From positions 8,556,001 through 8,620,000 of the forward strand of contig NC_088857.1 of NCBI RefSeq assembly GCF_963853765.1: 64,000 nt of DNA. Direction: 5' to 3'. Under the pieces are notes generated by a model, which was not told the origin of the DNA, ran no database searches, and was given only the letters and a program-made list of their open reading frames with translations. The stretch is from Magallana gigas (Eukaryota). The position numbers were made by a program, and so were the translations under genes. Below, in pieces: positions 39,602 through 62,308 of this stretch; within the stretch, counting starts at the first letter, position 1, and the number at the start of each line of letters is the position of its first letter.

Positions 39602-42600
39602 TTAAAGTTGCAAATCACCAACACTGGCGTTGGCCAAATACATATCTTTTTGACAAGTATTTTCCAGAGAAGCTTCTACTGTGAAAACCACCGTCTTTTG
39701 ATTTTCTTTTGTAATTTCTTTAATTTTGTGTGCTGGTTTTGCAAATTCTGCAACTGAATGGAACAGTTAATTTAGCACAAGATATATGATATATCATAAC
39801 AATAAGAAATGCCAATATAATTCACTTTTAAATCTGAATTATACCTTTAATAATTGATAATAAAAATAAAAAAGCAGATGCAATTTCAAATTCTTTTACA
39901 ATTCTTCGACTTGAACGATAAAGTGTCATCATATCATTTCATATACAACATAAGGAACATGGTATTGTAAAATTTGTTGTTGATGTAGTTTGTTATTGAA
40001 AGCCACCATCTTACCTTTTTCTTGAGCTTCATCACAAACTCGCAAGATACCAAACAATCTGAGTACTCCAAACATAAGTCCAGAAATCACAGCTGTCCAG
40101 ACAATTATGGCCATCAAGCCAATGCACTGCCAACCAAGGATCTTCATCAAAGAAGCAGAAATATGTATTAGATATGTGTCAGTCATTATAAACGCAAACA
40201 GATTATTATAAAGGATATCTTATTTTTTACAGTAAAGTCTTTATAGGCAACATGAGGGTCGTCCGTTAAATACTATGAGGTGAAAAGTGTAATGAGTAGA
40301 TGGAAAGCTGTCTGACGAGCAACATTTCAAAATCACTTACATATGCAGATTGAAGATTCCATGCATAAAATATTCCATACTTCTCATGAAAGAAAGCAAC
40401 TGCAATCAATCCCAAGCTGCCACCGCCAAAGTGGACTAAACGACAGAAATGGTGTATTTTAGGAAACAAAGTTGTAAAGATGATTTTGTTTGTTAGCCAA
40501 CATCGAAACCAATGCATAGCCAGTAAAATACCTGCAACAACATCCAGGGGATCATCAATACCGAGTCTGGTCAAGAGGAGAGAGTAGGCTGTGTATACAA
40601 TGATGGAAATCACACCAACAGCAATTGCGACATGTGTCGAATAATTATCATATCCAGTAGACACAGCAATCTATTCAATAAGTTTCAATACATTTTAAAA
40701 ATTCCAAAATATACAGACGCTAGCATAGTTTAAGGAGTATGTATAAGCAACGTAAAGTACATGTATATTGCCCTAATAACACAATGTTAACATTATTTTA
40801 ATCAGATTGCAAAGCATTCTTTGCAAAAAAATATATTATACATAAGTCCATGTAATAACCCACAAAGAAATCAATATTATAATAATTTTTGTTCGTCTAC
40901 ACTTGAAAAAAAAACCCAAAAAGTTGTTGCTAAGCTTGTATTTAAACGGACAGGATAATAATTCAGGTGATGGCTGGTAAACTTTTAAAACATTTTAAAA
41001 AATAAACCAGTTTTTAATTTTTTTTTAGATATCTTTTAAGTTAAACACTAAGCCACTTTTGTTGTTCTAGATTCATCTCTATTCCTATGAAAACCACATT
41101 CCCTCTAACTACCTTTTTTTATTCCTCCCTACTCCCGGGGATCATGATTTTAACTTGATTTTAGCTTTGATATATAAACCTGAAAATGACTTCACACAAG
41201 TTTAAGCTTCTCTACCTGAATAATTTTCAAAAAGAAGAGTGTTAAATAAAATCTATATTAATTCCTCTGTAAAAAAAAATAAATCCCATTGAGGTCGTAC
41301 TCTACCCCCCCCCCCCCCCCTTCCCTCCTCTCCGAGCTAGTAATTTTATCAAACTTAAACCTTAAGTACCTGAATATGCCTCCACATAATTTACAGCAAA
41401 TGTGTTTTGGAGAAAAAAAAATATCTCTGTATTCCTATGTAACAATCCACCTAACCCCCGGGAAAATCTGAATCTACACTACCTGATGATGTTTTCACAC
41501 AAGATGGATGTTTTCTGCTCTATCAGTTTTTGAGAAGGATTTTAAAGATTTTTCTTTAAAAAGTGCTATTCAAAATTTCGACCCCCACCACCCAATTGTG
41601 GCTCCAACCTTACCGCGGGGATCATGATTTCAACAAAAATTGTATCTACACTAAATGCGGATGCTTCAACATAAGTTACTGCATTACTGCAGCTTGCATT
41701 TAGAGCAAGTAGTGTATATTCATTTGTAAAAATTTGATTATATGGAACTTTAATCCACACAACCTGAAAATGTTTTTTGGGGGCAAATTGTTTTTGAGCA
41801 GTAGATTTTACTAACAATTTTTTTCTAATACTTCCTTATTATCCCCCTTTCAAAGTGCGCTTTTTATTTGACAAACTTATATCCACCTCACCCAAGGATG
41901 CTTTCTGCAAAGTTTTCTTGAAATTGGTTCTGGAGAAACCAAGAAAAACAAACATTTTAATTTTATTCTAATAAAACATATCCTGCTTTTCAATTAAAGT
42001 ACTTACCATTCCAGTTAACCCTCCATTGATGGCATTTAACGCACTCCGACCTGTTCCAAAATATCTATTATCACAATTAATCAGCAAGAGTAAACAAAAA
42101 CCGGCGAAGGAACCGGAAGTGAAAACATAGATAGTGGAATCCGCATCAAGATCTCCTTGGTAATTAATAACAAATAGCAATGGAGATTCCGAAATGATGG
42201 TCAAAAGTCCGATTGCCATAACCAATCCTCCCAAAAAAGCGATCTGTTAATTGAAATGAAACATCATTATATATTTTAACTTGACATTATATATATGTGT
42301 ATCTAAAAAGCACATTGACCACATTATTTATGTTCAACATATTAGTTAAAATATATATTGTTTTAGACTGGTGTATGCGTGCCACAATCTTCAAAAAAGT
42401 GTCATTTTAAAAAATAAACTAAATTAATGCCTTGCATTCTTGAAGAGTGAGTTTAAATTGTGCTCCATATTTTTTTCATAGTAAAAATACTATTGGAAAA
42501 CGCATCAATTTAAATCAACCAGAACTTGTAATAATGACCCACTTCAGATTAGCAATTTAATTTTGTATCCCGACAATTGAATGTTTTTAAGAAAATGATA

Positions 42601-45600
42601 GAAGTTCCATAACTCTATGATAAAGTTGTATATAGCATTTAAATATCGCACTAAGTGGTGACTAAAATATTACAACAGTTAAACACCAGGCCTCAGGATC
42701 ATGAAGCAGTCTTAGACTTTAGTTAAAATTGTATACTCTCTTGATGTCTCTAGATTGAAAACACTGACAAAACTGAAATGTTACTAAAATTGGCTGGATA
42801 TAAATTTGTTATTTACAAATTTTGATCGTCATTTTGTTATAAACAAAAATTTTATGGCTGACTGAAATTTTGTCTTAAGTCTGAAATTCCTTCATAATCC
42901 TGAGGCCAGTTTGTAGATATATATTGACGTATAATGGCGTCATGGTTTTTCTGTAATCTAACACTCTACACTACCCCTATGGATTGTTCCTTTATATATA
43001 GTGAATAATTTTGAACCTATATAACTGAGAGTCATATATTTCCAATGGCATGATTCATCTACAGTTTTCTTCTATTATAGTTATAATAAAAGTGATATAT
43101 GAATTCATTGAATATGTTCTAGTGTTTAAAATCTTTCGACTTCACCTAAAATTATTCCATTATTTGATTTACTTCGTAACTGCATGTACATTTCATCTTA
43201 TTTGCGTATTACAATCCATCTTTTTGCGTATTACAACTTGTATAATTATTAAATAGGTTATTATTTCATTATTTCGTAGAAAATTCAGGTGTAGGTATTA
43301 TGGTTTAACAATTAGAATGAAAAACATCAGTCAGCATGCTTAGTGAAAGATGTATACAAGGTCGTTGTATCGACCATAGAACGTAAGAAAAGATGACTTC
43401 AACCGAAACTGTAGATAGTCATGTTCCATCAATTTGTTTGTCATGATCAGTAGCTTGTCTCGTTTTAGAGCTTGCTCATACTAGAGCATGCCCTTGCGTA
43501 TCGAATTAACTGAGAGACAAAAAATCGATATGCAGGTGGTGAAGGTATATTGCTACATAAGTAAGAAAATTTGACTGTAGAAAAATTGCAGAGATCATGT
43601 TTATCATAAAGTTTTGTTGTTACATGTAGGTTACCATCAATATCCCTTTCCAGTAAAATATCCAAATATGAAACAGATGACGCTGACTGCTAGCAATGGG
43701 GCGCAATTAGTACCACGGGAAATCCAACAGATTGTTGGAATACCTGATTTCCAAAATCTACATTTATGTTGTCTATCAGAAACTCAGGCATCTTTTTTTG
43801 TTTATTTCAGAGTATTTGTGAGCAAAATTCGAATGATTTTCTACAAAATACTTTTGTAAATGACCAATGACAAGGTAAGTAAATTTACGTGATCAATTTT
43901 TATTGAACAACTATCCACTTCAGAGTACTTGTGTGAACATTCCAAATATTTTTTAATAAAACAGTTTTGTAAATGACCGATTATAAGGTAAGAAAATTTA
44001 TATGAAATTTTGTTTATTGAAAGAGCAGCTATCAATGATGAGAATTTTTTTTAAAAAAATGATCATCAGATAAATCATCAAGATTTAAACATTGACATTT
44101 CACGGTCTTCTTTTAGAAGAGTAGATAAAAGCAACAAATTGCGTCTTCACGTAAAGAAGCAATATTTAAAGCATCTAATTTTATCATGTTTGCGTAAACG
44201 AAATAACGTTCTTTCTGTGATCACATTAAGAAAGTGAGCAAAATGTATGGAAACGTTTATATCCTTATGAAATCTCTACTTATAGATTACAAATCGGGTA
44301 CGTGTAGGTGTATTTATAACACAAGTAGGTGTTTTAAATCTCATCCTCACGCGACGAAAAGCGATTATCGAAAACATTTAAGTATCTAAAACAAATGACG
44401 ACACGATATAGGACATGTTTGTTTAGATTGAGGATTCGATACCACTTAAATTTCAAATACTTTCTTTTTTCTTAATGTTTGTTAAGAAATTTTAACTAAT
44501 AGCGTGAATTTGTTCCATTGCAAAATTGTATCATAGAATTACAAATATTTTTCTAAAAACCTGATGAAAAACGAAAACATACCAAAATAAGGAATAGTCG
44601 TACTTAAGCTTTGACTTGTTTACCATATTTCTTATAATTTTACGGTTAAATGGCTTATACTTCCTCTTGAAATTTTAGACTTAGATCTGTTGAACTTAAA
44701 GCTGAAATGAATATATAAATTAACATGCTAAATATCTGTGTATGACATTTACAACATGAATAATCAATCAAGCTCAATCAATTTCCCTTTGAAAAAAAAA
44801 AGAAGAGAGGATCGTTGTGTACATGCATGTTTTGAATTTTAGTTTTGTAAATTGTTGTGTATATTTTGAAGAATTGTAGTGTTTTAAACCAATTCTTAGT
44901 TTTTTAAATTTCAGAATATAATGTGTTTAGTTTTGATATTTTTTGTTGGTTAGATATAATTTCATAAAATTAGCACTTTTGTTAAACCTGAGTGATATAT
45001 GTTACAACACATGCAATACTTGTATAAAATTGATATTCTGAAGCGTAAAATGGATAAAAATCATGAAAATCCCTTCAAATTGCTCTGCTTCTTATGCAAT
45101 ATTATTCAAACAAGACAATTATCATAATTTTTTTATTCTACAAAAATAATTATATATATTTAATAAAGTGTCTTTAGAACCATCAATGATGACGTCACTC
45201 GAATCGGTTTACCTTAGGTAAATTAACCAAGTAAGACCTGATAAATATTTAGAGTCCTGCTTTGGTGAGTGGTTATGATAAGTGTAATCGTCTAAAGAAT
45301 AACGTGATAAAACTCGCGCATTCCTTGCATAGGTTTGTTGACAGTATTTGACACATTATTAACATATATTTTTGTGAAAAAGTAGAATATTTATTTATAT
45401 TATATACTATATATATGTCTTCTTATCTAGATTGTATTATTGTATGATAAAGTACATTGTCGACTCGAATTTTGTCAACATTGACATTTACATCGTAATT
45501 TACATCGTCGACATTGTCGACGATGTAAATTAGATGTAAGAGGTACATGTTTGATATTAACACGATGTCGACTTGACTTCGATCGACACTGCAATGTCGA

Positions 45601-48423
45601 CGATGTAAAAAAGAAAGAAGAAGGCACACAATGTAGCCCAATGTGTCCAGCCACTGTTGGTCAACATCATGATGTCGAAAATGTTGACGATGTAAACAGG
45701 ATATAGGAGGTACGCTGCACATGCTAATTGTCGAGTCAATGTTGGTCAACACTGCGATGTAGACAATATCAATCAAACATCTTACATTGGACTTACCTCC
45801 TGTTTATTTACTTAACCACGATCACATCCAAGAAAAAGAACAATTTGTTGTGTTTCTTATTTAGCATAGATATAATTATCTGGTAACTTTGTTTTCAAGT
45901 CCTAACTTCTTAAAGAAAAAATTCTCTAAAGAAATATTCAATATTATTTTTCATTTTTCTTCAACCTTAGTAAATGAAACCCTTTTGTCTAGAATGCTTT
46001 CCACTACGTTTGTTGTTGGAATTTGTTCAGCGGTTCTTTAAAAGATAATAAGAATATAGTAAAAATATGAAAACTTTATGGGGACGGCGTTTATCTTTCT
46101 TAGCCATTTGGCTTAGATGAGTTACAAAGCAAAAATTAAGTATTACTCCTTTATTAATGTTTCACCGAATATCACCTTCAAAATATATTAATGATCTAAT
46201 TTATTTTCATTTTAGACAATAAAAATACGTTTTATAAATTAAATAACATACAATGAATTAAAACCTTCGATTAAAATATCAAAACATTTAATACCAATGA
46301 AAAAGCGTTCAAACTTTTGGACTTACTCGCGTTGAGTAGCAGCTTTCGGTGAAGTCTTTTTTAAGGGTGGGATCAAATCGACCGGTTCTAGGACCAATCA
46401 TCATGGCTCCCATAAGTGCTGCGATTCCTCCAATGACATGGACAGCCCCGCTACCGACATCATCCTGTACAAGTAATTTGGCACGAACTGTTATTGGTTT
46501 CATGCACGAGAGTATAAACTTATTTAGTATTAGAGTTGTTTTACCAGAACTGGTACCATTTGGTTCAGTCGAAAAGGTGTTATTTTCAAAACGCATCAAA
46601 AGAACTGATCCTTATGTTGCGAGTTCGAATCTTGATGGTGGATTTGTTTTTTTAGATTAGGAGTTCCGTTCGTTAGAAACCCTTACATTAACAATAAAAT
46701 GTTTTTTATGGATCCGAACTTAAAACAAGAGGCCCAGGGGCCACATCGCTCACCTGAGCAACACTTGCCTTAATTCTGATCAAATTAGCATCACAGTATC
46801 AAAATATCTTGACAACTAAGTACAGTAGATCTTGCTAAAAAAATAAAAAACCTTCCAATTTTTATCCAACTCTTTTTTTATGGTAAATACCAAGCCCCTT
46901 TTGTTGTTTTACCTGCAAGAAGATTTTTCTTTATTCCTATGTAAACCCCCCCCCCCCCATTTCGTTGCCCCAATTTTCTCTAAGGAATCATGGTTACATC
47001 AAACTTAAATCTGCATAACCTGTGCTTTCACACTAAGTACTGAATTTTGGACCGAAAACTTTCCCAGAATATTTTTAAAGATTGTCTCTATTAATTCCTA
47101 TGTAAAAATTCAAACCGCCATCATGGCCCCGCCATACCACTAGGGACTGGGATTTTGCAAACTTGAATTTATTTACACTACCCGAGGATGCATCTAAACA
47201 AGTTTAAGTTTTTCTGGTCAACTAGTCTTTAAAAAGAAGATTTTTAAAGATTTTCTCTACATATCTATGTAAAAATTCATCCCCCATTGTGGCCTCCCCC
47301 TACCCCTGGACTATTAATTAAACGAACAAATCTATACGATCTGGGGATGCTTCCACTCAAATTTGGGATTTCCTGGCCTAAAAGTTTTGAGAAGATTTTT
47401 AAAGATTTTTTCTATATATAAAAATTTATCCCCCAATTGTGGCCCCACCCTACCCCCGGGGACCATGATTTGAACAAACTTGAATTTACACTATCTGAGG
47501 ATGTTTCCACTTAAATTTGAGCTTTCCTGGCCTAAAAGTTTTTGAGAAGAAGATTTTAAAGATGTTTCCTATATATTCCTATGTAAAACATGATCCCCCT
47601 ATTGTGGCCCCACCCTTCCCCCGGGGACTATGATTTAAACAAATTTAAACTTGAATCTACACTACCTGAGGATGCTTCCACTCAAATTTGAGCTTTCCTG
47701 GCCAAATAGTTTTCGAGAAGATGATTTTTAAATATTTTCTCAATATATTCCTATGTAAAACTTGATCCCCCCATTGTGGCCCTATCCTACCCCCAGGGAC
47801 TATGATTTGAACAGACTTGAATCTACACTATCTAAGGATGCTTCCATTTTAATTTGAGCTTTCCTGGCCTAAAAGCTTTTGAGAAGAAGATTTTTAAAGA
47901 TATTCTCTATATATTCCTATGTAAAACATGATCCCCCTATTGGTGGCCCCACCCTTCCCCCGGGGACCATGATTTGGACAATCCTGAATCTATACTACCT
48001 GAAGATGCTTCTATTTTAATTTGAGCTTTTCTTGCCTAATAGTTTTTGAGAAGATTTTTAAAGATTTTCTCTATATATTCCTATGTAAAACTTGATCCTC
48101 CTTTTGTGGCCAAATCCTACCCACAGGGACCATGATTTGAATAAACTTGAATTTACACTACCTGAGGATACTTCCATTTTAATTTGAGCTTTCCTGGCCT
48201 AATATTTTTTGAGAAGAAGATTTTAAAAGATTTTCTCTATATATTCATATGTTAAACTTGATCCCCCTTTTGTGGCCCCTCCATACCCTTGGGGACCATG
48301 ATTTGAACAAACTTGCATCTACACTACCTGAGGATGCCTCCACACAAGTTAAAGCTTTTCAGGCCGCATAGTTTTTGAGATTTACCAACAAATTTTCAAT
48401 ATTTCTCAATTATCTCCCCTTCA

Positions 48424-48468
<45 letters not shown>

Positions 48469-48517
48469 ATAGTGGTGCTCTGTGATAAATTTAGTTGAAA
48501 TCTGCTTGGCGGTTCTT

Positions 48518-48548
<31 letters not shown>

Positions 48549-48585
48549 ACGACGACTACAACGACGACAACGACAGACAACGGAC

Positions 48586-48617
<32 letters not shown>

Positions 48618-51600
48618 TGGCTCAGGTGAGCTAAAAAAACCAACATAAAATTTTGTTTATGAAAGGAAAAACCAACTTTCATATTATAATAAGATTTCAA
48701 AGGGTTGTTGTTTTAACGTAAGAACATTGTTCCTTATATTTTGTTCAATAAGGAAATTTGAAACAAAACAGCAAATGGTGGGTTATATGGAAATTTAGCT
48801 TGTTTGATTAAGCGCTAGTTGTTGAATAATAATAACTCCTATNNNNNNNNNNNNNNNNNNNNNNNNNNNNNNNNNNNNNNNNNNNNNNNNNNNNNNNNNN
48901 NNNNNNNNNNNNNNNNNNNNNNNNNNNNNNNNNNNNNNNNNNNNNNNNNNNNNNNNNNNNNNNNNNNNNNTAAATATTACAAAACGGGGATATGTGATTG
49001 TTTATATATCATCATGACTTGTATTCATTGTTGTTTAATTACGTGAAAACCGATGCGAGCGTAGTCCAAAGTTGAATACTCGTCTCCATTGTATAACCAT
49101 CCCCTATTGTATAAGGTCCAGTGTCGAACAACGGGGTGGATCAAGCCTGCAAAAGTTTAATAAATACTGTCGTCATGTAGATCACACAAAAAAATGTTAT
49201 GTTAATCTTTTTTTTTCGTTTTAAATATATAATTAAATCCAATGACACGTGTATCCGAAAGATAGATTTATCTTTAAGCAATTATAATACTTTTTCATAG
49301 GTAGAATAATCAGATTTTGATCCAAACAGCATTTTGTTTTTCCATGTGATATATAATAGTGATTAGATGATAAATTTTTAGCGGGTTTGTTCGAGAATGT
49401 TTTATTTTTTTCCGATGAGTCAATTTTCAAATTTATGTTCTTGGGCTTAGTAAATATTGCATTCCGTTGGTAGCTTTTAAAAAGCAATAATGATTTAAAA
49501 AACAACGATGGTACAACATTTCCCTGGATGGTCAATGGGGGATTTTTACCTTTAAAAAAAATAAACATGGTAGTCACATACCTGTTATAAAGACAGTATA
49601 AACGAAGTGTGCAATAAACTTGCAGCGCTCCGCAACAGCACCAGACACAATTGATGCTGTCATTGATGCAAAAATGCACTGAAGAAGAATGTATTTGTAT
49701 GCAAGAATCTCGTCAGAAAAGTCCAATTTCATGCCAATGAACTTGTCTGCAGTTCCACCATCACTGAAGGCGAAGGCGTAACCAATAAGACAATAAACAA
49801 CTCCAGAGAGAACTAAAGAGGAGAAAAATTAAGTTACATGTTTTAAATGTGGCGGAAAATACAGAATTATTTTATTCGTTGTTTAAATTTAATAAAAAAG
49901 AAAGAACAATGCAAAGATAAAATCACAGCAAATCTTCACTGAAGTTACAGTAGACTAACTAAGATTGAAGACATGTCTGAGAAGTATTCTTTTTGTGTCT
50001 CCCAACCGGACTGCACCAACCTCACGTACAACGAATCCAATTTGGATAACTATAGAAAGACAAAACATCACATACAGATCAAATACTCTATACGATATAA
50101 ACGTGAAGTATATTCAAAATGATTCCATAAAGTTTAAGTTCTATTTTATTAAACTCAACTCATCAACTTCCTTCACATCTACAGAAAACAAACTGCATAA
50201 TGTACCTGTATATATAAAGTACTTTGAAAAAGTACTAGTATGAAGATCTGTCTTAAAAAACGATTAGATTTAAAGATCTTGGAAGGTATGCAAATGTCCG
50301 TACAAATTACATCTAGATTGTTGAATAAAGTGATATCTATTTCTCAATTTATACTCTTTAGGTAGTCTTAGTACTTTTCCGGGCATGTTTATCAAGTGTA
50401 AATATTCCCTATTTTTACGTTTCCTAGACATTGACCCGTGCGAGCACGGGTTGGCTTTGCATATCGGACATTTACGAAATAGGTACATCGACACACCTTA
50501 TTATTGACATTTACATAACAAAGCTAGAATTAAGCCTACAATAATGCTATTAATTTCACTACACTTTCCTTAGTTTGAATAATCTAACTGTGTTTCGGGA
50601 AAGGCCCTCACCACAGTTTGAATGCCTCCCTTATACCCGTAGTGTAGCAGAAAATTGCAAAATCGCTCCAAAACGAGAAAGTTAAGGAAGTTGCCTTGAA
50701 AATGACAGTCAAATTCATCACAACAAACCTTTTTGAGACTGCAAATACCTTTAAACAAAATTTTTTAATCCATTGAATGGAAGAATTCAACACCTTTTCA
50801 CCAACGTACACGTATTTTCTTTGTAAAACTGGGTCGTAGGATATTATTCATTTCTACGATAAAACATATTCTATTTTCACTCTCCTTACAAATATAATGT
50901 AACTTTTTTGCATGTTATCAAAGATTTTTTGTCATCACGAAGACAAAAGTAAGTACCTAGTTGAAATGTATATTTGTTATTTTATACTTTTTCTCATAAG
51001 AAATCATTAATATGGATAGCAAAAATCCAATGAAAATTTACACGTATTTGTATTATTACATGCAGATGTGATATTGTGGAAGCATAAACTAAAGATCCCG
51101 TTAGCGTGAATATATTACGCAAGCGCTAGATTGTAAAATCCAAAAAATCCAGGTGATTTCCGGTATTTTTAAAGAAATTTTCGCTGACAATAAGTTAGCG
51201 AAGCTTAACTGAGAAAAAATAAAAACAAATTGGTAATCATCAAGTACCAATGATGTTTAAAATATATAAAACAAAAGACAGTTTTCTTCCGATTTATTAA
51301 AGACCAAAAATTTGAGTCTATTATTTTAAAAAAGTAGTAGAGATGTGGGTTTCTCCAACCCTGGAATCCATCATTGCTTTATTCTGTTTTCTTCAGAACC
51401 AAATTAATGCGTTCACCTAATTTCCTTCTTTCGTTTGCTGCATAATAACCTGCTCCTAATACATGCATTTAGGCATTTGCAGTGTAATGAAATTTCAGAG
51501 AAAGCTTCACATATACACATTACATGAACACCTGTTATCACATGATCTCTATGATGCAAAGTGAAAATAATGTCAAAAACTTACAAATAAAGCCAATTAT

Positions 51601-51648
51601 AAAAGACCAAAATCCAGCTTCAGAACTAAAATTCCTAACGGACGTCAT
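39602..51648 (-). CDS. amt: Ammonium transporter (Amt family) paralogue A, divergent, 10 coding exons, 456 aa
   Basis: Exons: 51648-51585, 50049-49960, 49812-49582, 49146-49043, 46464-46327, 42243-42007, 40670-40532, 40435-40341, 40141-40015, 39747-39602. They sum to 1371 nt, all introns are GT-AG, phases are compatible and there is no internal stop. Amt motifs: QIGF..EVGAVR, SIVSGAVAER, HPVVRHW..GWL, GSGAVH.IGG...GPRTGRF, NGGLTGM, IDDPLDVVAVH. AATAAA at 39540-39535. An additional upstream exon is possible. Confidence 0.93.
40960..41945 (+). repeat. Degenerate Cg170-like satellite/Helentron remnant in Amt-A intron 6
   Basis: Decayed monomer motifs (TTGTGGCTCCAACC..GGGGATCATGATTT..TCTACACTA..GATGCTTC) and a 3' core (ATTATCCCCCTTT..CAAACTT..TCCACCTCACCCAAGGATGC) similar to 47280-48560. 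Confidence 0.7.
42690..42906. mobile_element. Harbinger-like MITE, 217 bp, CAG target-site duplication
   Basis: TIRs GCCTCAGGATCATGAAG and CTTCATAATCCTGAGGC (1 mismatch), with CAG immediately outside both ends. Confidence 0.8.
43297..43682 (-). mobile_element. Penelope-like retroelement RT C-terminal fragment (decayed)
   Basis: Translation SVSYLDILLERDIDGNL..TKLYDK..NF..V.F..LCSNIPSPPAY.FFVSQLIRYARAC...KLM..DY...RLKSSF..FYGRYNDLV matches the recalled RT-thumb region of mollusc Penelope-like elements. Frameshifted. Confidence 0.75.
45440..45770. repeat. GTCGAC/ACGATGTAAA-rich internally repetitive element with a 37-bp palindrome
   Basis: TAATTTACATCGTCGACA-T-TGTCGACGATGTAAATTA at 45496-45532, plus repeated TGTCGAC and GACGATGTAAA motifs in both orientations. 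Confidence 0.7.
46724..48637 (+). mobile_element. Non-autonomous Helentron (HINE-type) carrying a ~166-bp Cg170/HindIII-like satellite array
   Basis: 5' AACAAGAGGCCC with sub-TIR GCTCACCTGAGC (46748-46759). 3' hairpin GCTCACTTGAGCC-TTT-GGCTCAGGTGAGC (46748 partner at 48603-48631) then an A-run. ACAACG/ACG microsatellite at about 48546-48588. The monomer anchor TTGTGGCC recurs at 47287, 47437, 47602, 47774, 47940, 48104 and 48270 (spacing 150-172), with two decayed monomers upstream. AAGCTT at 47873. The family name is from recall of oyster literature. Confidence 0.85.
48843..48970. other. Assembly gap (128 N) in Amt-A intron 4
   Basis: Run of N read directly. Confidence 1.
50424..50451 (-). 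mobile_element. Helitron 3' terminus (hairpin + CTAG)
   Basis: The minus strand reads ACCCGTGC-TC-GCACGGGT-CAATGT-CTAG, the canonical hairpin a few nt upstream of CTAG. The next base is G rather than the usual T. The 5' end was not located. Confidence 0.6.
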
Positions 51649-52247
51649 ATTGTAATACTTGAAATAACGAATCAGAGTCCTACTATGTCTTAGTTGAACT
51701 TAAACAAGATTTTGCACCGTGTCGTCAAAGTGACAGCCAACTTCCTAGTTGAGTTCTTAAAAAGATATGTTAGTCGATGCAGGCCGTCAAGCGGTTTAAA
51801 TGCCTCAAATTACCTGGGGTTCTTTTTACATGTGTATTAAAATGTTAATGTTGTGCGGTTTCTATGTAACAAAAAGGTGTGCTGAAAAAATAATGAAAAT
51901 GGTTGTAAATGTTAATGTATCACTGATAAACACTTTATAAAATGTACATGTACACATACTTTTTACATGGAGAGCATCATTTAACGACAGCCTAAAGAAG
52001 AACATCCACAACAGAGAACTTACAACAGAGAGCACCATCGTTACCAGACGCCGATGGAGATAAAAAGGATAGGTTCTTTGAAATAGAAAATTCATCAAAA
52101 CGCCAGTCAATCACAAGAAAAGCTTTCAATTTCATTCCAAAGAACAAGATATATAGAGAATGACCAAGAACATCATGAAGAATACATGTAACAGAATAAC
52201 AAGGAAGCATTTAATCACTGAAGGGGATGGTTGGTTCGGCTGACTAT

Positions 52248-52445
52248 GCTCCGATTTCACAAAAAAAAAACAAAAGTCAAATCTCAGACTTAAGTCTGAG
52301 TTTTTTCTCAAATATTTGATTTTTTTTCTCAATCTTGAGAAAACTCAAATCTCTGCATTTCACAAAAAAATCTTAGTCGTGTTTTTTACTCAGTTTGAGA
52401 AAAATCTTAAGTTACCTCCATAGCAGACTTAAGTCAAATCTCAAA
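52248..52445. mobile_element. MITE fragment with GCTCCGATTTCACAAAAA terminus
   Basis: Internal palindrome CTCAGACTTAAGTCTGAG. Its terminal motif is the reverse complement of the end at 53674-53692. Confidence 0.5.
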
Positions 52446-52611
52446 TGTGAATATGTCATTAACATCATTAATACAGTATTATATTGTCTGCAATGTTCAT
52501 TTCTTAGATATATTCCACTCAATAATCAGCGTATATGCAATATTTTATGCAGGTTTAATAAATATTTTTTTCATTAAAAAGTAATAATTTTGGCGGATTT
52601 ATCTCCCTTAA

Positions 52612-53224
52612 AGCTGCTTGGTCCGATTTTTTTGTAATTACAGTATCAACATTTTTTTCATACAAATCATTTATCTTAGAAAGTTATGGACTTTCCCCCT
52701 ATTTACACCAGCAGAATCAGTCTCCTTTCAAAGTTAGAAATATTCAAAGTAAATAAAAATAATTTCTCTTTGGGCAAACGAAAAAACAAACCAAAATGCA
52801 TCACGGGAATGTTTAGAAAAGGAAACTGCATAATTTCGTCCCCCGAATGATTGGGGCTATGTGACCCACATGCTATGCATCGATTGTAAAGAAAGCAGAC
52901 TTTAGAAATATTGGCTAACAAAACGTACACATGTTTATTTGTAATTTGTCTGATTATTTCGACCTTTATTTAAAGCGATGTCAAATTCGTAATACAACCA
53001 TACCCGTCTCGTAGTCAGGGGTGAAATTTAACATGAGGCGAAATAACGCGGCACCTTTTAATGTCGTTTTGTTTTGTTAGCAAATTTTGTACGTATTTTT
53101 CTTCATTGAAATTTGGCATAATTGACGGGTAAAACTACTGTAATGTCTATTTTTATAAATATACAGGCATAGCCATCGTTTAAAAGCGAGTATAAAATTT
53201 GATATAAAATCGGACCAAGCAGCT
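52612..53224. mobile_element. Kolobok-type non-autonomous transposon, 613 bp, TTAA target-site duplication
   Basis: Perfect 19-bp TIRs AGCTGCTTGGTCCGATTTT and AAAATCGGACCAAGCAGCT, with TTAA at 52608-52611 and 53225-53228. A 5'-AG (RR) terminus with a TTAA TSD fits Kolobok rather than piggyBac (5'-CC). Confidence 0.85.
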
Positions 53225-53544
53225 TTAACAAAAATGTAAACAACGGTAACTAATTCATTTGTTTGTGTTAAATGGAATAACTGTGCAGTGATTCTACTTT
53301 CTAATGATTTTAAGGTAACCATGATGTATTTAATGTGGTCTTATGTTAGCTATATAATATATAAGATCATGTAGATATGCCATCTATACTTAGCATAACA
53401 AAGTGTACATTTCATGAATGATTAAAATTTTATGACTCTTGTTAATTTAATTCCTCTGTTGAAAACATAAGCAGACGATTGTTTTTATTAAGTATATATT
53501 TAAAAAAAACAGGAGATGTTATAAGGGGCCACTTGTGACAATGA

Positions 53545-53692
53545 AAATTCTTGACTAAAAAAATTCAACTCAGCTGAGAAATGACTAAGTTTGATTTGTG
53601 AAATGCAATTTGAGAAAAATTTCAGCTGAGTAAATTCTCAGGATTTGAAATCAAACTTAGGTAAAATCTTAAGTTTTTTGTGAAATCGGAGC
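53545..53692. mobile_element. Harbinger-like MITE right half
   Basis: Ends CTTAAGTTTTTTGTGAAATCGGAGC followed by CAG, with internal CTCAGCTGAG palindromes. Confidence 0.55.
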
Positions 53693-55507
53693 CAGGATTG
53701 TCTTGCCGGGAATAAAATAAAACGTTCATTGAAGCCCTATACATCACCATTTGTAAAGGACAATGATATTGAAAGCTGTCAAAAGTTGTCACATTATTCT
53801 GACATTCTAATAGACACTCCGATGTAGCACAGCATATACCATAAAAACGAGATATTTTCAGAAATTAATAATCTTAAAACAAGTGAATATAAAGAAACGC
53901 AAGTCGAACTCGATGAGTGTTAAACGCTGTTTTTGATGGAATGGTACAATAGAATATGCACAAAAAAGTATCGTCTTTTTCTTTCTCACCTTCATTTATT
54001 TAAAAACGACTTTAACCCGATCGTAGATTAGAGCCATTTTTAAAATTTATCAAATAAATATCTGTTGATCAAAAGTAAACTTTTTATACTGCATCTGTAA
54101 GGCATCGTTATAAAGCTACACAGAAGTTTGAAATTCGCCAAAAAATAACGAAAAAAGTCTGGAAAACAAAGTGGGGACAGAAGGACAGACAGATAACGAT
54201 AAAAACAATAGACCCAACGGTGTTATGGGTAAGGGACTAATACATATGGTAACAGTGTTTCAATTTTACAACATAATGCAATAGCCAGTCATAGGTTCGT
54301 GCGAACACCATCACACACACCTCCACAAACACACACATGCACATTATGTACGGTACGATCTTTGGTTTGCCGCCTATTTACTTTGATTTCCTTATGAAGG
54401 AACCTGATAAAAAAGTAATTTCGATTTTTATCACCGAAAACGTTGATATTGCATATGTATTGCATCTTACTGCACCTCTCAAATTAATTGGTTAAAAAAA
54501 TAACAAAAAAACCCAAAATGCAAATGAAATTTAATAATATAGTAAATGCAAACAAGCTACAAGAAAAAGCCTATTACATACAACGTGATTGGTCACTGTT
54601 GTAAACATTATTGAGCACGGTAAGGGATTTAAAAAGGTGGCCAACACACGAGCAGATTTTAATAAATAAATACATCAAAACATCTTACTTAACTAATGGA
54701 AAAAACAAATTAAAACAATTCCTCAAACCAAACAATATGCATGTATATAAAACAGAATGAATTACAACTTAAATGTTTGCATAGCTTCATGATAAAAAAA
54801 AAATAAAGACAAACAAAAGCATTACAAAACATATGGAACGATTTTTTGTTACATGTAGTCTTAATTATGTTGCTTTAAAAGCCTATTTATATACTTTACC
54901 AATTTAACCAAAATTACATCATTGGCGTCTTGTACAAAACTGATCTGATATATACTACGTAAAAGTAACGTTTTGTTCCACAAAAATCTTTTCTTAATGA
55001 ATGTCAAAATGTGAATCAGTTTTATATAAACGGGTTTTATTAGATTTGAAACTTTCAACGTTATTTTTTTGAATAACCAACGTGTCATTAAAAATTCACT
55101 TACCTACGTCATAAACAAGGGACGTAAGCCACAGAAGTCGATATTTATACTTACATGTAATAACACGATCGTTTTACAGCCTGAGATAAAAAAATTCACT
55201 ATGATCAATCAAACCAGCTTAATTTCAAATTTAGAATTATATTAAGAGGATACTAACTTTTACGTAGGTTCATGTCCCCGCTATACCTGATTTACAAAGC
55301 TAAATCATTCTGATTTATCTTTACAATAAAGTGAGTAAAGTAGTACAAAATGATCTTCTGATGCAGATTGATGTTGTGTCTGACATATTCTTAATAATCA
55401 ATCATAGTCTGCTAATTAGATGTACCTGATATTAGTATAAATGTTACAAGAGGACATTTCGTCTCCAGTTGTCTGTGTATTTGACTGACTATTCATTCCG
55501 TGAAGCA

Positions 55508-58500
55508 TCAAAGATGGAAGTCACTAGCTTTGTCGCCGGCAAAGTATGTGTCCTTTTGGCAAATCTTCTCTGGAGAAGCATTAAAGGTGATATCCACTGT
55601 CTCTTCGTTTTCTTTTTTAATGTCCATAAATTCGTATGCTGGGTGTGCAAATTCTGCAATTGAATTGAAAAGTAATAATACAGCAAACTAGATCGTTTCA
55701 TTTAATATGTGAAAAAGTACACTCTCAGAAATTAAAATGAGCATTTGACATCTACACATTTTTTATCTGGTCAGGAACAATCTATGGACATTTTCTTTTA
55801 AAACGATACGTTTTACCAGTATCAAGTTGGAAAATATGAAGGTTTGCTACGCGATTGCGGCTCAACAGAAAAAAACTTTTCATGTAAGCAAAACGTGTGT
55901 CTTTTTTTCTATAGCGCTATTAACATGATTGCCGATGTATAAGTTGATATTTGTGTTTTATAAAGTTGTACGTGATAAATAAAACAAAAATTATAAGGAA
56001 TATTTATTTGATAAACAGTAATGCAAATATTGCTTATTGTAAAGGAACTGTGGGTCTAATTTAAAAGTGTTTGTATGCTGCTACTTCACCTTTTTCCTGA
56101 ACTTCGTCGCATACTCTCAGTATACCAAAACATCTAAGGATCCCAAACATGAGTCCAGAAAGCACAGCCGTCCACACAGTTATTGCAACCAATCCTAACA
56201 ACTGATAGCCAAGTATCTAAATCATGGAAGCATATATCAGAATTATATATTTTGAGTCTTATTTCAAAAGAGAAGTTAGGATTACTATGAAGGATAGTGA
56301 TTTTAATCCTCGCTCATTATTTGCATAATTTATGTTTTTAAAAAAAATGTCAAACGTTTAATCACTATATATATGATTGTACGTGGTCTCAGATTAAGCA
56401 TGATCTGAATATTGTGGTGTGTTAAGCAATCAAACCAAATAGAATTACTTACAGATGCTGCAGATTCGGTCTGCCATGCATAAAGTATCCCTTTGGTCTT
56501 GTGAAAGATTGCTACAGCAATCAAACCCCAGCTTCCTCCGACAAAGTGGACTAAAAAACAAAAATTATGTATATTTTCAAACAAACGTTGAACAAAATTT
56601 AACTATTTTGTACCAATTTAAATCGCTTATCAGATACCTGCCACAACATCCAGAGGATCATCTATACGGAGTCTAACCAAGAGGACAGAGAAGGTTCTGT
56701 ATACAATGGCGGCAATAAGTCCAACTACGGCTGCGGCATACGGTTCAAAATGATCACTTCCGGCGGAAATGGCAACCTATACAATATGTTTATATCAATT
56801 TAAATAATCTAATGAATTAAAAATCTTTTAAGAATCTTAAGCAAGTGCAACTGAATAAAAATGGTATTTAGAAAAAATCAAAACCATCACTGAATGTAAA
56901 AAAAATAATGTATGTTCGTTTTAGAATGCAATTCTTAGTTATGCCTTGTGTATCTAACTGACAGTAGATAAAAGATTAAAACTATTGTGTAGGAAGAACG
57001 ACATTTGAATTTGCCAGAAGGGAGTACGTTATAACTTGTCACATGTTTCTTTCTCTTGATGCGTATATCCTTTTAAGAATATTAGACAACACAGATGTTA
57101 GTTTGATACTGCAAGAGCAATCAGATATTAATTTGTAAAATAAATGTGTTTCAAAAAGCTTTTTGAGTTTCAAACATCAATGTTTTGTTTAAAATCAATT
57201 TTAATAAGTTTTAGTATATTTGGTCTTTTAACTAACGAAATATTTTGGAAAATGTCTGTTGTTCCTTGTTCCTGTTGGTCCCAAGAATGTAAAAGTTTTG
57301 TAATATTTGTGATAAGGTAGGCTTTTCTTTTATCTGGAGTTGAAATTTATCATCCGTAATGCGACATTTTTTGCTATTTTAATTATTAACTTTCAAAATT
57401 TTTCAATATATTGTCCCGTGAAATAACGAATAATTTAATAATCAGTACCATAATCTAAATTTGATTCAACACAAGCTTTAAAAGAATAATTGTTACTATT
57501 GCCAAAAAAATTTCATTATATGTCTCTTATGTAAAACATCATTTTTTTTTACAATGACTGGTAAATGTACATGCACATGTATGTCTTGCAATCGGACAAC
57601 TTACCATTCCAGCCAAACCTCCATTGATGGCAACAAAAAGACTCCATTTTTTCCCAAAATACCTATTGATAAAGAGTGAAGTGATAGCAGCAATAAAGCA
57701 GGATGCGGAAGGATTGACCTTGGAAAGAGCTATTGGATCATATGAAGATTCAAAGACAAAGAGTTCCCGACATCCCCAGATGAAGGCTAAGAACCCAATC
57801 AGCAGAATAAATCCTCCTACAGCAGCTACCTGTTTATTGAAATGAGACATTATTACATAAGGTTATTTGTAAAAGAAATTAAGGTAAATATTTAACTGTA
57901 AAAAAAACTAAAACAAGAGATCTACAGACCACATTTTTTTTCTTTAATTTCAATGCATAATTTTGTTAGAAATTGCGTTACCATTCTTGCCTCCATACTG
58001 TCCACACACCATACACTCAACAAAACTTTTAAGTGTTCACCCAGTATAATGTATTTTATATATAAAAAAGCACATGTCGAGGTCAAATCAAACAGCAAAT
58101 TTAAAGTGAATACGATCTGTTGTGGAAATAATGCTGACACCAATTTTCCAACGGCTCTGGCTGTGTTTGCAGTGATCACTTTGGTCATGTTAATTGGTTT
58201 TCTTTTAAAACAATAACCAAAGACTTAAATCAATCACAAAATATTAAATATATTATATCATATTAAGCATGCACAGAACAATATCAACTTCATGTTTTAA
58301 CGTTTTGTCACGGGTAAATGATTTCGATCGCTGTTGTTTTTTATCTGTGCTATTGAAGAGAAGACATATCAGTTCTGAAATGTTGAAAATTTAACATCAT
58401 TTTATTTTGTCATTTCAAAATTATTCTATATATATTATGGTGAACACTTAGAAGTATTGTTGAATGTATACTCTTTAGAAATGTTTTATCTAATTTACAT

Positions 58501-61500
58501 TTCTTTACTTTTGAATTTCAACTGCAAACCCTGTGAGATACGGTTTATGAATCAAATATTAATGTTACTTTTTGCTGTTGTAAAACTTCAAGTTATATAC
58601 TATTTTCGTTGTACTCTATGTCAACACTTAAATTCTTTTCTTACATCGTTGCCTTTATTTTCACAAAACATGGCCTTCATTTTCTATAAATTATTTGTTT
58701 TGTTAAATTGTTTCCCCATTCGATAGTGATGGACCCTACGGGTCAAGAAAACATTGCTAGAAACATCAATACATGAGCTCGACAACCTTCAGTTTTTTTA
58801 AACAGATAGACAAAATATTTGGGTTATTTGGTGAGGGTGAACTATATAAAGTTGATTTTGAACAATGATTATTTTTTCTTCTTAAAATAACAATGATTAG
58901 TAGTGAAAATTAGACAAATTTCGTTGGTTTAAACATCATGCATTTATAAATTCTGATATATTGGTTTTATTATAGATCAAAAGTACAACGAGGCCTTACT
59001 CGTGCTGAGTAGCATCTTTCTGTGAAGTCTTTTTTAAGGCTGGAATCAAATCGACCAGTTCTAGGACCAAGCATCGCGGCTCCAACAAGCGCTGCGATTC
59101 CTGACACAACGTGAATCGTACCGCTACCAGCATTATCCTGTAGAAGTAAACAAAGGACACATTATTATGTTTTATGACATGACAGAAGCTGTAATCAGTT
59201 ACTTGTGTGTGAGCATATACTTGTGTGGTATTTTTATTTACTGTTTACAATAAATTCGAATTAGGATATGTCAGCAATGTGACCATGGGGCATACCATTT
59301 TCCGTAAAACAGAGATGAGTCTATTTTTGTAAACAAACGAATTTATTCATAATGTTATGGTTTTTGTCGATTGCTTCTGTATTTTTTTTCATATGATCAT
59401 CATATACAGTATACCTATTTATTGGCTATGAGGCCGATAGCAAGTTATTGACCCCCGAGACAGCACTTATTTTTCGAGACGAAACCGAAGGAAAAAGTTG
59501 CTGTTGAGGGGGACCAAAAACATGCTATCGTCCGAAAAGTCGGTAAATAGGTATTATAAAATCCCAAAGAAAACTTGTACTGTCTGTGATGCAAATTGTC
59601 TTGATGGTAAACTTTGTTAACCTTCCAACTCGGAATTCAACAAAGGTATTTCGAGTATAAAAACTCGGAAGGTGAACCCTAAAATATATTCACAGGGTAT
59701 AAGAAATGCTATTATTTCATGCAATGAAACCAAACTGTGATGATTGTGATGGGTGATGATCATCGTCATCATTATGATGATCATGATAATGATGATGATA
59801 AAATCGGTATGAAATTTTACCATGCACGGTCAAACAACCTGACAAGCTGTTTGTGGATGATAGTGTTTTTTCTCGCATTATACAAGGTGCAAAATCGGTT
59901 TTCCGTTCTGAGGCAGCAATGTAAGAGGTTTTTTTGTCCGGCACACTTTTTATTGTTTAATTACCTGATAAACGATGGGTTCGATGTTCAACCATCCCCT
60001 ACCATATATAGTCCAATGCCTTGCCACCGGGTGAATAAAACCTGAAAATAATTACATATGTTTGAAAAATTCCTAATTTAAGTCGTTCTGGCTTTGTTAA
60101 TATAAAACGTCGTCTGGCGTAGCTTTATCATTGGATACATAAAACAGCAGTATCTGTAAAAATTTTACACAAAACATTCACAAGTTGTAAAAAAGTACGT
60201 TTAAAGATAAAAGAAAAGAAACTAAAATAATGGTTTCATACCTGATATAAACACAGTGGTTATAAAATATGCGATTAACTTGCAACGCTCTGCAATAGCA
60301 CCAGTCACTATTGACGTGGTAATGGATGCAAAAGCGGACTGGGTGAGAATGAAAACGTATGCAATCAACTCGTAAAGAACGACAAATGTTGTGCCAATAA
60401 ACTTGTCTGCGACACCACCATCGCTTAAGGCGAGTACGACACCAAACAGGCAATAAACAACTCCGGAGAGAACTAAAAAAGGAAATAAAAAACATTTCAT
60501 TTCATTGAAAAATAAGATTTAATTGTCTAAAGTACGTTCTACCTTCTTCAATTTTAAAATCTTGAAACATAAAAGTTTTCAGGTATAGATCAAAGTAAAG
60601 GTTGTTTTTTTTACGTACTGAGGCAGATACGTTTGATAATTGGTTGAATGCAAGAAAGTAATGGGTACCTCCATTATGAAAGCTTTTAACCTTATAGGCC
60701 TTAACGGTCACCTGAACGAGTTATAATTACATGTAAATATAACCCTTGCAATATAAAAACAAGCATGAGCAACAGGAGGGCGAGATAAATGGTAAAAAGT
60801 ACTGACTTCTCAACAATTGTTTTCTTATATACAAAAGTTTATAAACAGAGAAAAAAGGTTAAAGGAAACCAGTTCAAGCACTCTCTTTAAAAGAGAAGAA
60901 TTCATATCTCCAAATATGGTAAGGTCGCAGACTGTAAGAGTTTGACGGGCACCCCCCCCCCCAACCCCCTCACGAAAAAAAATGTGGAACATTTTGTTAA
61001 ATGATTGTTAAGATAGCCCCAAGTGACTGTTTTATTCAATTCCAGATTGTTCGTAATGCCTAAATTAAAATATATTGGTTGAAGTGTTTGCAATGTCAAG
61101 TTGCTTAACACTTACAGAATATAAAGTGTTATGGAAATATGGAAAACTGCGCTTGCTGATACGCCAATGCTTGTAAAAAGTTGTTCTGAACTCTACTAAG
61201 ATATTTTTCACACGGATTTAAGATTAGAGAAAACAAATATGTGTACATTCTTTTTTACACTTAATTCTTAATAATCACCCCTCACTTTCAAACCATATAA
61301 ACAAGGATCAGCTTATCAAATGTTTGACACTGCCTTTTTTATCTAGCCATGTACTTAATGTCCTTATGCTTGACGTCTAGCATTAGGAAGTGTATTTTTA
61401 GAGAAATAAAATGCAGTTTTTCATAATATGATCAAAACAATATTAACATGAGAACCACTGACGCTGCAAGACCGTCAATTTCACTATTTTGGTAGGTGCT

Positions 61501-61832
61501 CATTCGCATCATCATAACAACAGTGAATCGAAAACTAAATGAAAAGATTTTGAATTAATTTAATAGAATTTAAAACGAGTGTACTACTGTAACCAGCACC
61601 ACTTAACCTGGGGCAGGCAATTTTACTATTTTGTTGAGCACAACTTATGAAAGTTGATTAAGTTTAACTTAATGTATGTTAATGGTTTAGAATAAGACAA
61701 CGAAACAAAGCAAAGATAACATCAATTTTAAAGCAGACTCACGTAGATTGACGACGTGCCTGATGATTATTCTTTTCGTGTCTTTAATCCGGACAGCACC
61801 AACTTCACGTATGACAAATCCAAATTGTAATA
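55508..61832 (-). CDS. amt: Ammonium transporter (Amt family) paralogue B, divergent; 9 exons visible, 5'-incomplete in this window
   Basis: Exons: 61832-61743, 60472-60242, 60041-59965, 59137-59000, 57829-57605, 56776-56638, 56550-56453, 56216-56090, 55653-55508. They sum to 1271 nt with the same phases as paralogue A and no internal stop. Motifs: QFGF..EVGAVR, SIVTGAIAER, HPVARHW..GWL, DNAGSGTIH, GPRTGRF, GFLAF, NGGLAGMVAISAG, IDDPLDVVAVHFVGGSWG. The first coding exon was not found between 61833 and 64000. Confidence 0.92.
59420..59550. repeat. Dispersed repeat fragment with imperfect internal inverted symmetry
   Basis: GATAGCAAG..CCCCCGAGACAGCACTT versus AAGTTGCTGTTGAGGGGG..CATGCTATC arms, inside an Amt-B intron. 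Confidence 0.45.
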
Positions 61833-61849
61833 CTAAAGAATACAAAACA

Positions 61850-62244: not shown

Positions 62245-62308
62245 TAATCAAAGTACTGAAAGCCGGGCTCTTTTTGGTGTCTTTATGCATATTGTGTAGT
62301 AAAGACTG

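Follow-up and report, generated by a model that had tools for sequence, protein, structure and literature searches.

Two neighboring genes of the ammonium transporter (Amt) family, referred to below as A and B, are located on the minus strand of a 64,000-nucleotide stretch of the genome of the Pacific oyster Magallana (Crassostrea) gigas (NCBI RefSeq assembly GCF_963853765.1, contig NC_088857.1). This stretch, C5:8556001-8620000, is called the window; positions are given in window coordinates, and extended coordinates run past 64000. An earlier note, made from the sequence alone, had described the two genes as a tandem pair of intact but atypical Amt paralogues. Gene models were built from stop-to-stop translations and splice-site reading, and the short first exons were located with full-length database proteins. 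Each gene possesses 10 coding exons with open reading frames (ORFs), and all 18 introns are of the GT-AG type with the phase series 1,1,1,0,0,0,1,0,1 common to both; the open frames and identical intron phases reported in the note are thus found in the full spliced models. The position that it had taken as the start of B, 61832, needs correction, as the first coding exon of B lies past the window end. The model of A is an exact match to P0025, the NCBI entry 'putative ammonium transporter 1 isoform X1 [Magallana gigas]'. Six residues separate the model of B from P0020, a Logan transcript protein (131-member cluster), while P0002, the UniRef model of B (418 aa), omits part of an exon. Residues were mapped by MAFFT to the mature numbering of Escherichia coli AmtB (precursor minus 22), for which 11 landmark positions were verified on the K-12 amtB gene. 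The features of both genes are as follows, with TM denoting a transmembrane helix and N1/N2 the inner cation pocket described further below.

39602-51648, minus strand: whole coding span of gene A; 10 coding exons, 458 aa, exact P0025 match; PF00909 at 206.5 bits.
51585-51648, minus strand: A exon 1; N-terminus with the start codon, TM1 (first half); placed by means of the N-terminal peptide of P0025; GT donor in phase 1.
49960-50049, minus strand: A exon 2; remaining TM1 and loop 1 (GFVVREVG, LGD..R...RH); N1/N2 positions R30, E31, R46, H47 and N50 by alignment to Ks-Amt5 (6eu6) and the signature test.
49582-49812, minus strand: A exon 3; TM2-TM3, F107 equivalent kept, AERC motif; PF00909 E 6.8e-12.
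49043-49146, minus strand: A exon 4; IHPVVRHWTL (Y140 to H, W148 to L) and long loop, by alignment.
48843-48970, no strand: assembly gap (N run) inside A intron 4; flanking exons join in phase 0.
46327-46464, minus strand: A exon 5; DDVGSGAVH (D160 and H168 kept, F161 to D) to CYS (G195 to C, H196 to Y), by alignment.
42007-42243, minus strand: A exon 6; TM6-TM7, W212 to L, F215 to I, N216 to I, S219 kept, by alignment; the exon alone has no Pfam match.
40532-40670, minus strand: A exon 7; TM8-TM9, ending in IDDPLDVVA.
40341-40435, minus strand: A exon 8; VHFGGGS (H318 kept), TM10.
40015-40141, minus strand: A exon 9; TM11.
39602-39753, minus strand: A exon 10; C-terminal tail without GLD..HGE.AYP, stop codon; acceptor set by the exact P0025 match.
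55508-64000, minus strand: coding span of gene B within the window; 441 aa in full; PF00909 at 244.6 bits.
Extended 64142-64088 (C5:8620088-8620142), minus strand: B coding exon 1, 88-142 nt past the window end.
61743-61832, minus strand: B exon 2; TM1 and loop 1 (GFVIREVG, IKD..R...RH); the loose end of RNA contigs at 60472 runs into the last 30 bases of this exon.
60242-60472, minus strand: B exon 3; TM2-TM3; junction 60041/60242 in reads.
59965-60041, minus strand: B exon 4; IHPVARHWTI (W148 to I); junctions in reads.
59000-59137, minus strand: B exon 5; DNAGSGTIH to CYS; reads.
57605-57829, minus strand: B exon 6; W212 to F, F215 kept, N216 to I, S219 to C; reads.
56638-56776, minus strand: B exon 7; reads.
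56453-56550, minus strand: B exon 8; VHFVGGS (H318 kept); reads.
56090-56216, minus strand: B exon 9; TM11; reads.
55508-55653, minus strand: B exon 10; tail and stop codon; junction 55653/56090 in reads.
55000-55507, minus strand: B 3' untranslated region (UTR), of at least this extent; stranded polyA depth 10-29x in run X22.

The sole N run of the window (48843-48970) sits between A exons 49146-49043 and 46464-46327, both edges of which are in phase 0. The exon junction, ..ARIGFH/DDVGSG.., is unbroken in P0025, in P0026 (an independent, polymorphic transcript of the same species) and in P0024 (an orthologue from another species). The junction further lines up, with no gap, against the D160 motif of canonical Amts, and gene B holds no exon in the intron equivalent to A intron 4. 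Since the edges are in phase 0 and the junction is continuous in three proteins, the gap conceals no coding sequence of gene A.

The two genes do not stand alone. A six-frame Pfam scan of the whole 564-Mb assembly, combined with tblastn on 60 kb beyond the window, revealed three further paralogues within 45 kb beyond B, so that the supposed pair is part of a five-gene tandem array in the order A-B-C-D-E, all on the minus strand.

Extended 72942-83111 (C5 ~8628942-8639111), minus strand: copy C, modelled intact, 439 aa, with the A/B intron phases; F107 to I; member of the atypical clade.
Extended ~86889-91957 (C5 ~8642889-8647957), minus strand: copy D, equal to P0010.
Extended ~93606-108090 (C5 ~8649606-8664090), minus strand: copy E, equal to P0138.

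Copy E shares 66% identity with Pinctada and Mytilus AMT1 and 64% with Tridacna AMT1, and it keeps 88/88 of the columns that are at least 97% conserved across 119 canonical animal Amts. By sequence, E is a canonical bivalve AMT1 and the apparent parent of the whole array. In copy D both pore histidines are replaced by Tyr (H168Y and H318Y), F107 is changed to Y, F215 to I and S219 to P, while W148 and N216 are kept. Its transcript records form a 105-member cluster, and its dN/dS (ω) against a relative from another species is 0.23-0.31. These data suggest that D is a maintained, probably non-conducting protein of the Amt fold. Four more Amt loci were observed elsewhere in the genome, at C6:11.38 Mb, C6:35.79 Mb, C5:33.97 Mb and C2:27.09 Mb.

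A phylogeny, one of the checks proposed in the earlier note, was inferred for 48 proteins with IQ-TREE (LG+C20+F+G4, posterior mean site frequency model, quick search). Copies A-D form a clade (support 99) inside the oyster AMT1 clade (100), and are thus placed within or sister to oyster AMT1 and not with the Rh proteins. Stem lengths are 0.73 to A-D, 1.26 to A/B/C and 1.34 to D, compared with a median tip of 0.4. A tree with A-D outside canonical bivalve AMT1 was rejected by the approximately unbiased (AU) test (p = 0.038), which did not separate a position sister to all oyster AMT1 from one nested within Crassostrea/Magallana (p = 0.61); the duplication may therefore date back as far as the oyster family itself. 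Relatives of copies A-D turned up only in M. gigas records and oyster transcriptome runs, and a word-indexed search of the same database found none among the proteins of C. virginica, Saccostrea cucullata and Ostrea edulis. An exhaustive search of representatives with a 76-aa exon query gave 19 matches, including the ids of full-length proteins. The statement that the A/B/C clade occurs in at least three oyster species rests on dS and on transcripts that share a run or adjacent accession numbers. E lies ~30-45 kb further along the same strand as A/B, and its exon pattern is common to both. As placed by the phylogeny, A and B belong to a set of four fast-evolving tandem duplicates (A-D) of the AMT1 gene E, a set confined to oysters. 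The 'bivalve Amt subfamily' of the earlier note is a constrained, atypical subfamily as proposed, but, with relatives found only in oysters, it is not bivalve-wide. Literature searches of limited coverage found no description of the A/B/C clade, and the public annotation of A is simply 'putative ammonium transporter 1'.

Membership of A and B in the Amt family is clear from profile and fold comparisons. Against PF00909 (cut-off 23.2) A scored 206.5 and B 244.6 bits over profile positions 5-387 of 399, compared with 380.9 for E and 357.1 for Tridacna AMT1. Under NCBIfam TIGR00836 (cut-off 343.3), a model for prokaryote annotation and hence indicative only, A (216.3), B (258.2) and D (255.3) fail, while E (408.3) passes. 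PF00909 was the sole match in a Pfam scan of the A and B proteins, with no fused transducer module such as a histidine kinase (HK) or GGDEF domain. An AlphaFold2 (AF2) model of A, built on a 100-sequence alignment, has 11 long TM helices (predicted local distance difference test, pLDDT, 82.8; predicted TM-score, pTM, 0.87) and a C-terminal tail of ~45 residues with pLDDT <50. The top 44 Foldseek matches of this model are all Amt/Mep structures with probability 1.00 and a TM-score up to 0.84, led by Ks-Amt5 (6eu6) and Sd-Amt1 and followed by Af-Amt1, AmtB and Mep2. Rh structures rank 45th and lower, with a TM-score of ~0.6 and 14-17% identity. A phmmer search of a single B exon against PDB gave no match, whereas the whole proteins did, the best matches being sensor Amts (A 6.6e-35, E 1.1e-62).

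Expression of gene B was followed by placing stranded polyA raw reads of two 2026 runs and RNA-library contigs of two older runs on 55000-60999, a region that covers gene B only. Run X22 contributed 239 reads at ~1% sampling, with a depth of ~10-13x over the B exons and ~26-29x over the 3' UTR, and its first mates fall essentially all on the plus strand, consistent with minus-strand RNA. All 7 introns in the region are spliced in reads at the exact predicted bases, with CT..AC ends on the plus strand (minus-strand junctions 55653/56090, 56216/56453, 56550/56638, 56776/57605, 57829/59000, 59137/59965 and 60041/60242). The gene B transcript is thus polyadenylated and correctly spliced. Only 15 reads of run X21 fall on 55000-60999, compared with the 239 of X22, so that expression of B varies with the sample. 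For gene A the RNA evidence is indirect and consists of the transcript-derived proteins P0025 and P0026, and relatives in other transcriptome runs are found as intron-less contigs of 1.7-2.6 kb, that is, as spliced mRNAs.

Three further observations were made on these transcripts. In transcriptome assemblies, P0026 is a 379-aa isoform of A without coding exon 6 (TM6-TM7, 42243-42007), from which the F215/N216/S219 region would be absent. At window position 59104 the assembly encodes Ser163 of B, and this residue is Ala in 11/11 X22 reads and in P0020. Within B intron 5, at ~58011-58056, reads and contigs of three runs end loosely and continue into other sequence, which suggests a polymorphic insertion/deletion or a repeat relative to the assembly.

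The departures of A and B from the family consensus were examined in an alignment that joined AmtB and copies A-E with five transcript relatives and with a canonical set of animal Amts. This set comprised 119 sequences, later 174, from molluscs, annelids, brachiopods, nemerteans, flatworms, cnidarians, echinoderms, hemichordates, amphioxus, crustaceans, insects, a myriapod and Limulus. Copies A, B and C together with the five transcript relatives constitute the A/B/C clade of 8 sequences. In TM1 the canonical GFAFLEAG is changed to GFVVREVG (A) or GFVIREVG (B), and in loop 1 SKN..N...KN becomes LGD..R...RH (A) or IKD..R...RH (B). In both proteins IYP is replaced by IHP and GHS by CYS, whereas in place of DFAG A has DDVG and B has DNAG, and in place of FN they have II and FI, respectively. 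The twin histidines are kept (GAVH in A, GTIH in B, VAVHF in both). Every replacement listed in the earlier note, as well as the twin His, was recovered in the A and B sequences. The most telling change, which the note had not spelled out, is that of W148 to L (A) or I (B). The positions concerned compare as follows, with the occurrence of the AmtB residue among canonical Amts followed by the residues of A, B and C.

W148: canonical 173/173; A L, B I, C F.
F161: canonical 168/174; A D, B N, C D.
N216: canonical 172/174; A I, B I, C I.
F215: canonical 174/174; A I, B F, C F.
G195: canonical 174/174; A C, B C, C C.
Y140: canonical 171/174; A H, B H, C H.
N40: canonical 172/174; A D, B D, C D.
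N43: canonical 171/174; A R, B R, C R.
K47: canonical 173/174; A R, B R, C R.
N48: canonical 171/174; A H, B H, C H.
D51: canonical 170/174; A N, B N, C N.
H399: canonical 172/174; A F, B F, C F.

Far from being chance or common variants of animal Amts, these replacements are essentially absent among the 174 canonical sequences. Of the 88 columns with at least 97% conservation across the 119 canonical Amts, 38 are kept in all 8 members of the clade, 17 have switched to one, or nearly one, new residue clade-wide (type-II sites) and 33 are variable. D160, G163, H168 and H318 are invariant in all 8 A/B/C sequences, and the AERC and IDDPLD..VHFGGG motifs are kept. A and B retain F107, which is replaced by I in C; F215 is retained by B and C, with I instead in A and in the A orthologue. 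Compared with canonical AMT1 proteins such as E (P0138), those of Tridacna squamosa (P0152) and Sinonovacula constricta (P0160) (PMC10215384), A and B therefore share PF00909, the 11-TM fold and the exon pattern, and retain D160, G163, the twin His and both of these motifs. In contrast, they are only 47-50% identical to E, 50/88 near-invariant columns are changed or variable, and W148, F161, N216, G195, Y140, the N1/N2 ligands and GLD..HGE.AYP are lost.

A separate variation at the pore histidines was noticed in the canonical set. Five otherwise canonical bivalve Amts carry H318N with H168 and W148 kept, namely P0182 and P0189 (Potamilus), P0185 and P0191 (Sinanodonta) and P0228 (Ruditapes). 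They represent a separate natural twin-His variant, mostly of freshwater mussels.

Such extensive divergence raises the question of whether A and B are merely redundant duplicates under relaxed selection, drifting to loss with no distinct function. A codon model of seven A/B/C coding sequences (410 codons) gave a maximum-likelihood ω of 0.52, and ω = 1 was rejected (2ΔlnL = 83.6). Pairwise dN/dS is 0.09-0.12 for E versus its orthologue, 0.23-0.31 for D, 0.37-0.56 for B-type pairs and 0.54-0.73 for A versus its orthologue. A pairwise ω of ~0.9 for copy C was discarded as an artefact of non-homologous ends in transcript P0028, the core of which is 96.4% identical with too few changes for ω. Among A, B and C, dS is ~0.65-0.69, and ORFs are intact in the 8 A/B/C-clade sequences, from several species. 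When neutral evolution of the B ORF was simulated, it stayed open in 1.3% of runs at 0.1 substitutions/site and in none at 0.2. Because ω = 1 is rejected and the ORFs remain open where simulated neutral ones close, the genes are selectively maintained, under a constraint that is much weaker than that on the parent gene (~five times) or shifting. The earlier note had regarded both genes as constrained and had held that a dN/dS near 1 with no expression would speak against its reading; ω is well below 1 and transcripts exist.

Drift toward loss would fit the ω of about five times that of the parent, the 33/88 canonical invariant columns that vary within the clade, the failure of A and B under the TIGR00836 cut-off, and the high allelic polymorphism of B, which has 6 amino-acid differences between assembly and P0020 and many variants in reads. 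On the other hand, the rejection of ω = 1, ORFs and splice sites that are intact in A, B, C and 5 other-species transcripts at dS ~0.6-0.7, where neutral ORFs close fast, the 17 sites fixed to a new residue across the clade, and polyadenylated, correctly spliced transcripts all run counter to it, and we regard it as quite unlikely.

The replacements fall on sites to which the transport properties of this family are ascribed. The S1 recruitment site is formed by S219, W148 and F107, the Phe gate by F107 and F215, and the S2 site by F215, W212 and H168 (PMC10433425). The canonical S1 site is not found in A or B, as W148 is lost (L/I); S219 is retained by A but replaced by C in B, and F107 is kept in both. 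Across the A/B/C clade, W148 is changed to L/I/V/F, F161 to D/N/Y and N216 to I/L, and S219 is variable. Of the S1 residues NeRh50 has the Phe alone, and no site of ammonium binding is seen in it (PMC10433425). Because the S1 site of NeRh50 likewise keeps only Phe, the outer vestibule of A and B is, as read from the alignment, Rh-like (Phe kept, Trp lost, Ser variable). This likeness to Rh proteins (NeRh50, human RhCG) concerns the way of working only, with the Phe alone in S1, no Trp-based site, the twin His retained and the Phe gate retained at F107 in both proteins and at F215 in B. A and B are not members of the Rh group, since the tree places both within animal AMT1 and Rh structures stand far lower in Foldseek. 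The same positions have been altered in E. coli AmtB W148L and S219A, in parallel with the natural changes W148 to L (A) and S219 to C (B). The title of Fong et al. 2007, as cited in PMC11152129, states that W148L raises flux, and a flux increase in an AmtB variant by Javelle is described in PMC10433425. However, the AmtB variants are single substitutions in a bacterial scavenger, whereas those of A/B are among dozens of others.

A rebuilt entrance might serve another ligand, and altered substrate or ion selectivity (methylamines, a K+ or H+ leak, or another small solute) would account for concerted, clade-fixed replacements around vestibule and pocket that are not random, including the 17 type-II sites, for a polar or charged residue next to D160 (F161 to D/N) and for an Arg/His pair in the inner pocket. 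Nevertheless, the twin His, on which selectivity depends strongly (PMC11152129), is intact, and the evidence here points to no candidate ligand. A change of substrate is therefore considered very unlikely.

The second group of replacements is located near the cytoplasmic end of TM1-TM3, at the inner N1/N2 cation pocket of the sensor Amts. Ligands of N1/N2 have been given for Ks-Amt5 and Sd-Amt1, and in Ks-Amt5 the pocket comprises Glu31, Arg46, Asn47, Asp50, Thr109 and Thr112 (PMC11152129). The corresponding signature, Q-x6-E-x15-N-x2-D..T-x2-S/T, is also carried by transporters such as plant AMT1 (PMC11152129). In a HMMER alignment of A with 6eu6, R30-E31, R46, H47, N50 and S105 stand opposite Tyr30-Glu31, Arg46, Asn47, Asp50 and Thr109 of Ks-Amt5. 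The full published expression matches only 2/119 canonical animal Amts, owing to the F/T position and spacing, and the core Q-x6-E-x15-N-x2-D was used instead. Copy E has this core, as do 114/119 canonical animal Amts. The motif test found it absent from A, B and C (E kept, N47 to H, D50 to N) and from D (D to L). From the alignment of A to 6eu6 and the signature test it follows that the TM1 Arg and the SKN..N...KN replacements coincide with the N1/N2 pocket, where the clade has a new Arg beside the Glu, Lys changed to Arg, Asn to His, Asp to Asn with loss of charge, and Thr to Ser.

These data also bear on the suggestion of the earlier note that A and B have a sensory role, acting as ammonium sensors or transceptors that signal instead of transporting. 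Ks-Amt5 (6eu6) and Sd-Amt1 (8qj3/8qj4) are the nearest solved structures in both sequence and fold, the TM1/loop-1 replacements fall on their N1/N2 ligand positions, and the pore core is kept while flux-related sites are changed. However, E matches the same PDB entries far better (1.1e-62 vs 6.6e-35), and therefore the resemblance extends to the animal Amt clade as a whole and does not mark a sensor; it was rejected as support for sensing. Moreover, the N1/N2 core found in most canonical Amts is broken in A/B/C, the outer S1 site with its Trp/Ser pair, present in the sensors, is lost, and no histidine kinase, GGDEF or other transducer domain is fused, the tail being ~45 low-confidence residues. 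A sensory role is thus most improbable.

A third change affects the C-terminus. The motif GLD..HGE.AYP after TM11 is not found in the A/B/C clade or in D, in which GLD is deleted or replaced, H399 is changed to F and P405 to K or E. The C-terminal region may mediate cooperativity between subunits (PMC10433425).

Taken together, A and B are intact, expressed and selectively maintained proteins of the Amt fold in which the conduction core (D160, G163, both pore histidines and F107, and in B also F215) is kept while both cation sites and the C-terminal motif are rebuilt. They probably move or handle ammonia differently from a normal transporter, and an altered affinity, direction or regulation is a reasonable expectation from such sequences. 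The reading that we favor, tentatively and at somewhat less than an even chance, is that the twin-His pore of A and B remains a path for NH3/NH4+, one of low affinity that has escaped the usual regulation, in the manner of Rh-like facilitators. The retained twin-His pore would pass NH3/NH4+, loss of the S1 and N1/N2 sites would remove high-affinity capture, and loss of the C-terminal motif would remove the usual allosteric control. Low-affinity, Rh-like facilitation of this kind would suit ammonia disposal or acid-base handling and not scavenging.

Several points weigh against facilitated conduction. F215, the inner Phe of the gate and invariant in the 174 canonical sequences, is lost in A, where conduction may be impaired or changed. 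W212, F215, N216 and S219, which line the S2 site and the entrance of the pore, differ among clade members, which would be unexpected of a tuned pore. The absence of the C-terminal motif could just as well reflect lost activity, and an ω of 0.5 also fits a substantial relaxation of constraint. The AF2 model of A is that of a monomer and is uninformative on conductance.

Non-transporting RhD and RhCE assemble with RhAG, and plant AMT1 proteins form hetero-oligomers. By analogy, A and B could be non-conducting or poorly conducting modulatory subunits that tune the activity of AMT1 (E) in heterotrimers. Such a role would agree with the adjacency of all five genes, with the loss of the A/B binding sites, with the loss in A-D of a motif possibly involved in subunit cooperativity (PMC10433425), and with copy D, whose pore is Tyr/Tyr and which nevertheless shows an ω of 0.23-0.31 and many transcript records. 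It is harder to reconcile with D160, G163 and both pore histidines, which are invariant in 8/8 sequences despite heavy divergence and are difficult to explain without passage through the pore. Modulatory subunits are accordingly an unlikely alternative, albeit one to be taken seriously.

In a wider scheme, the oyster AMT1 array would represent a stepwise natural conversion of one ammonium transporter into new kinds of Amt-fold protein. The Arg by the N1 Glu, together with the His and Asn that have taken over from the ligands Asn and Asp, might act in A/B/C as a tethered cation that fills the N1/N2 pocket and locks the ligand-bound state seen in sensor Amts, while loss of the outer Trp would make entry Rh-like. 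D (Tyr/Tyr) would be a plugged, non-conducting partner analogous to RhD/RhCE, and heterotrimers of the locked A/B/C and plugged D copies with AMT1 would form a tunable ammonia valve. As a whole this scheme is a long shot.

In Amt/Mep/Rh proteins, a textbook example, recruitment, gating, selectivity and signalling are thought to depend on a handful of residues, namely the Trp/Ser pair of S1, the Phe gate, D160, the twin histidines and the N1/N2 pocket. The oyster array resembles a natural mutagenesis series, in which A/B/C keep the twin His and D160, D has dropped the twin His, and the parent E adjoins as a control. It could show which sites conduction, affinity and regulation need in an animal Amt, and may be relevant to the ways in which oysters of the intertidal zone deal with ammonia and acid-base stress. 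Should the A and B proteins prove inactive, the array would be an ordinary case of relaxed duplicates.

Elsewhere in the window, 25607-26662 on the plus strand holds a single ORF of 351 aa with a full FAM124 domain (PF15067, E 1.2e-48), apparently intron-less.

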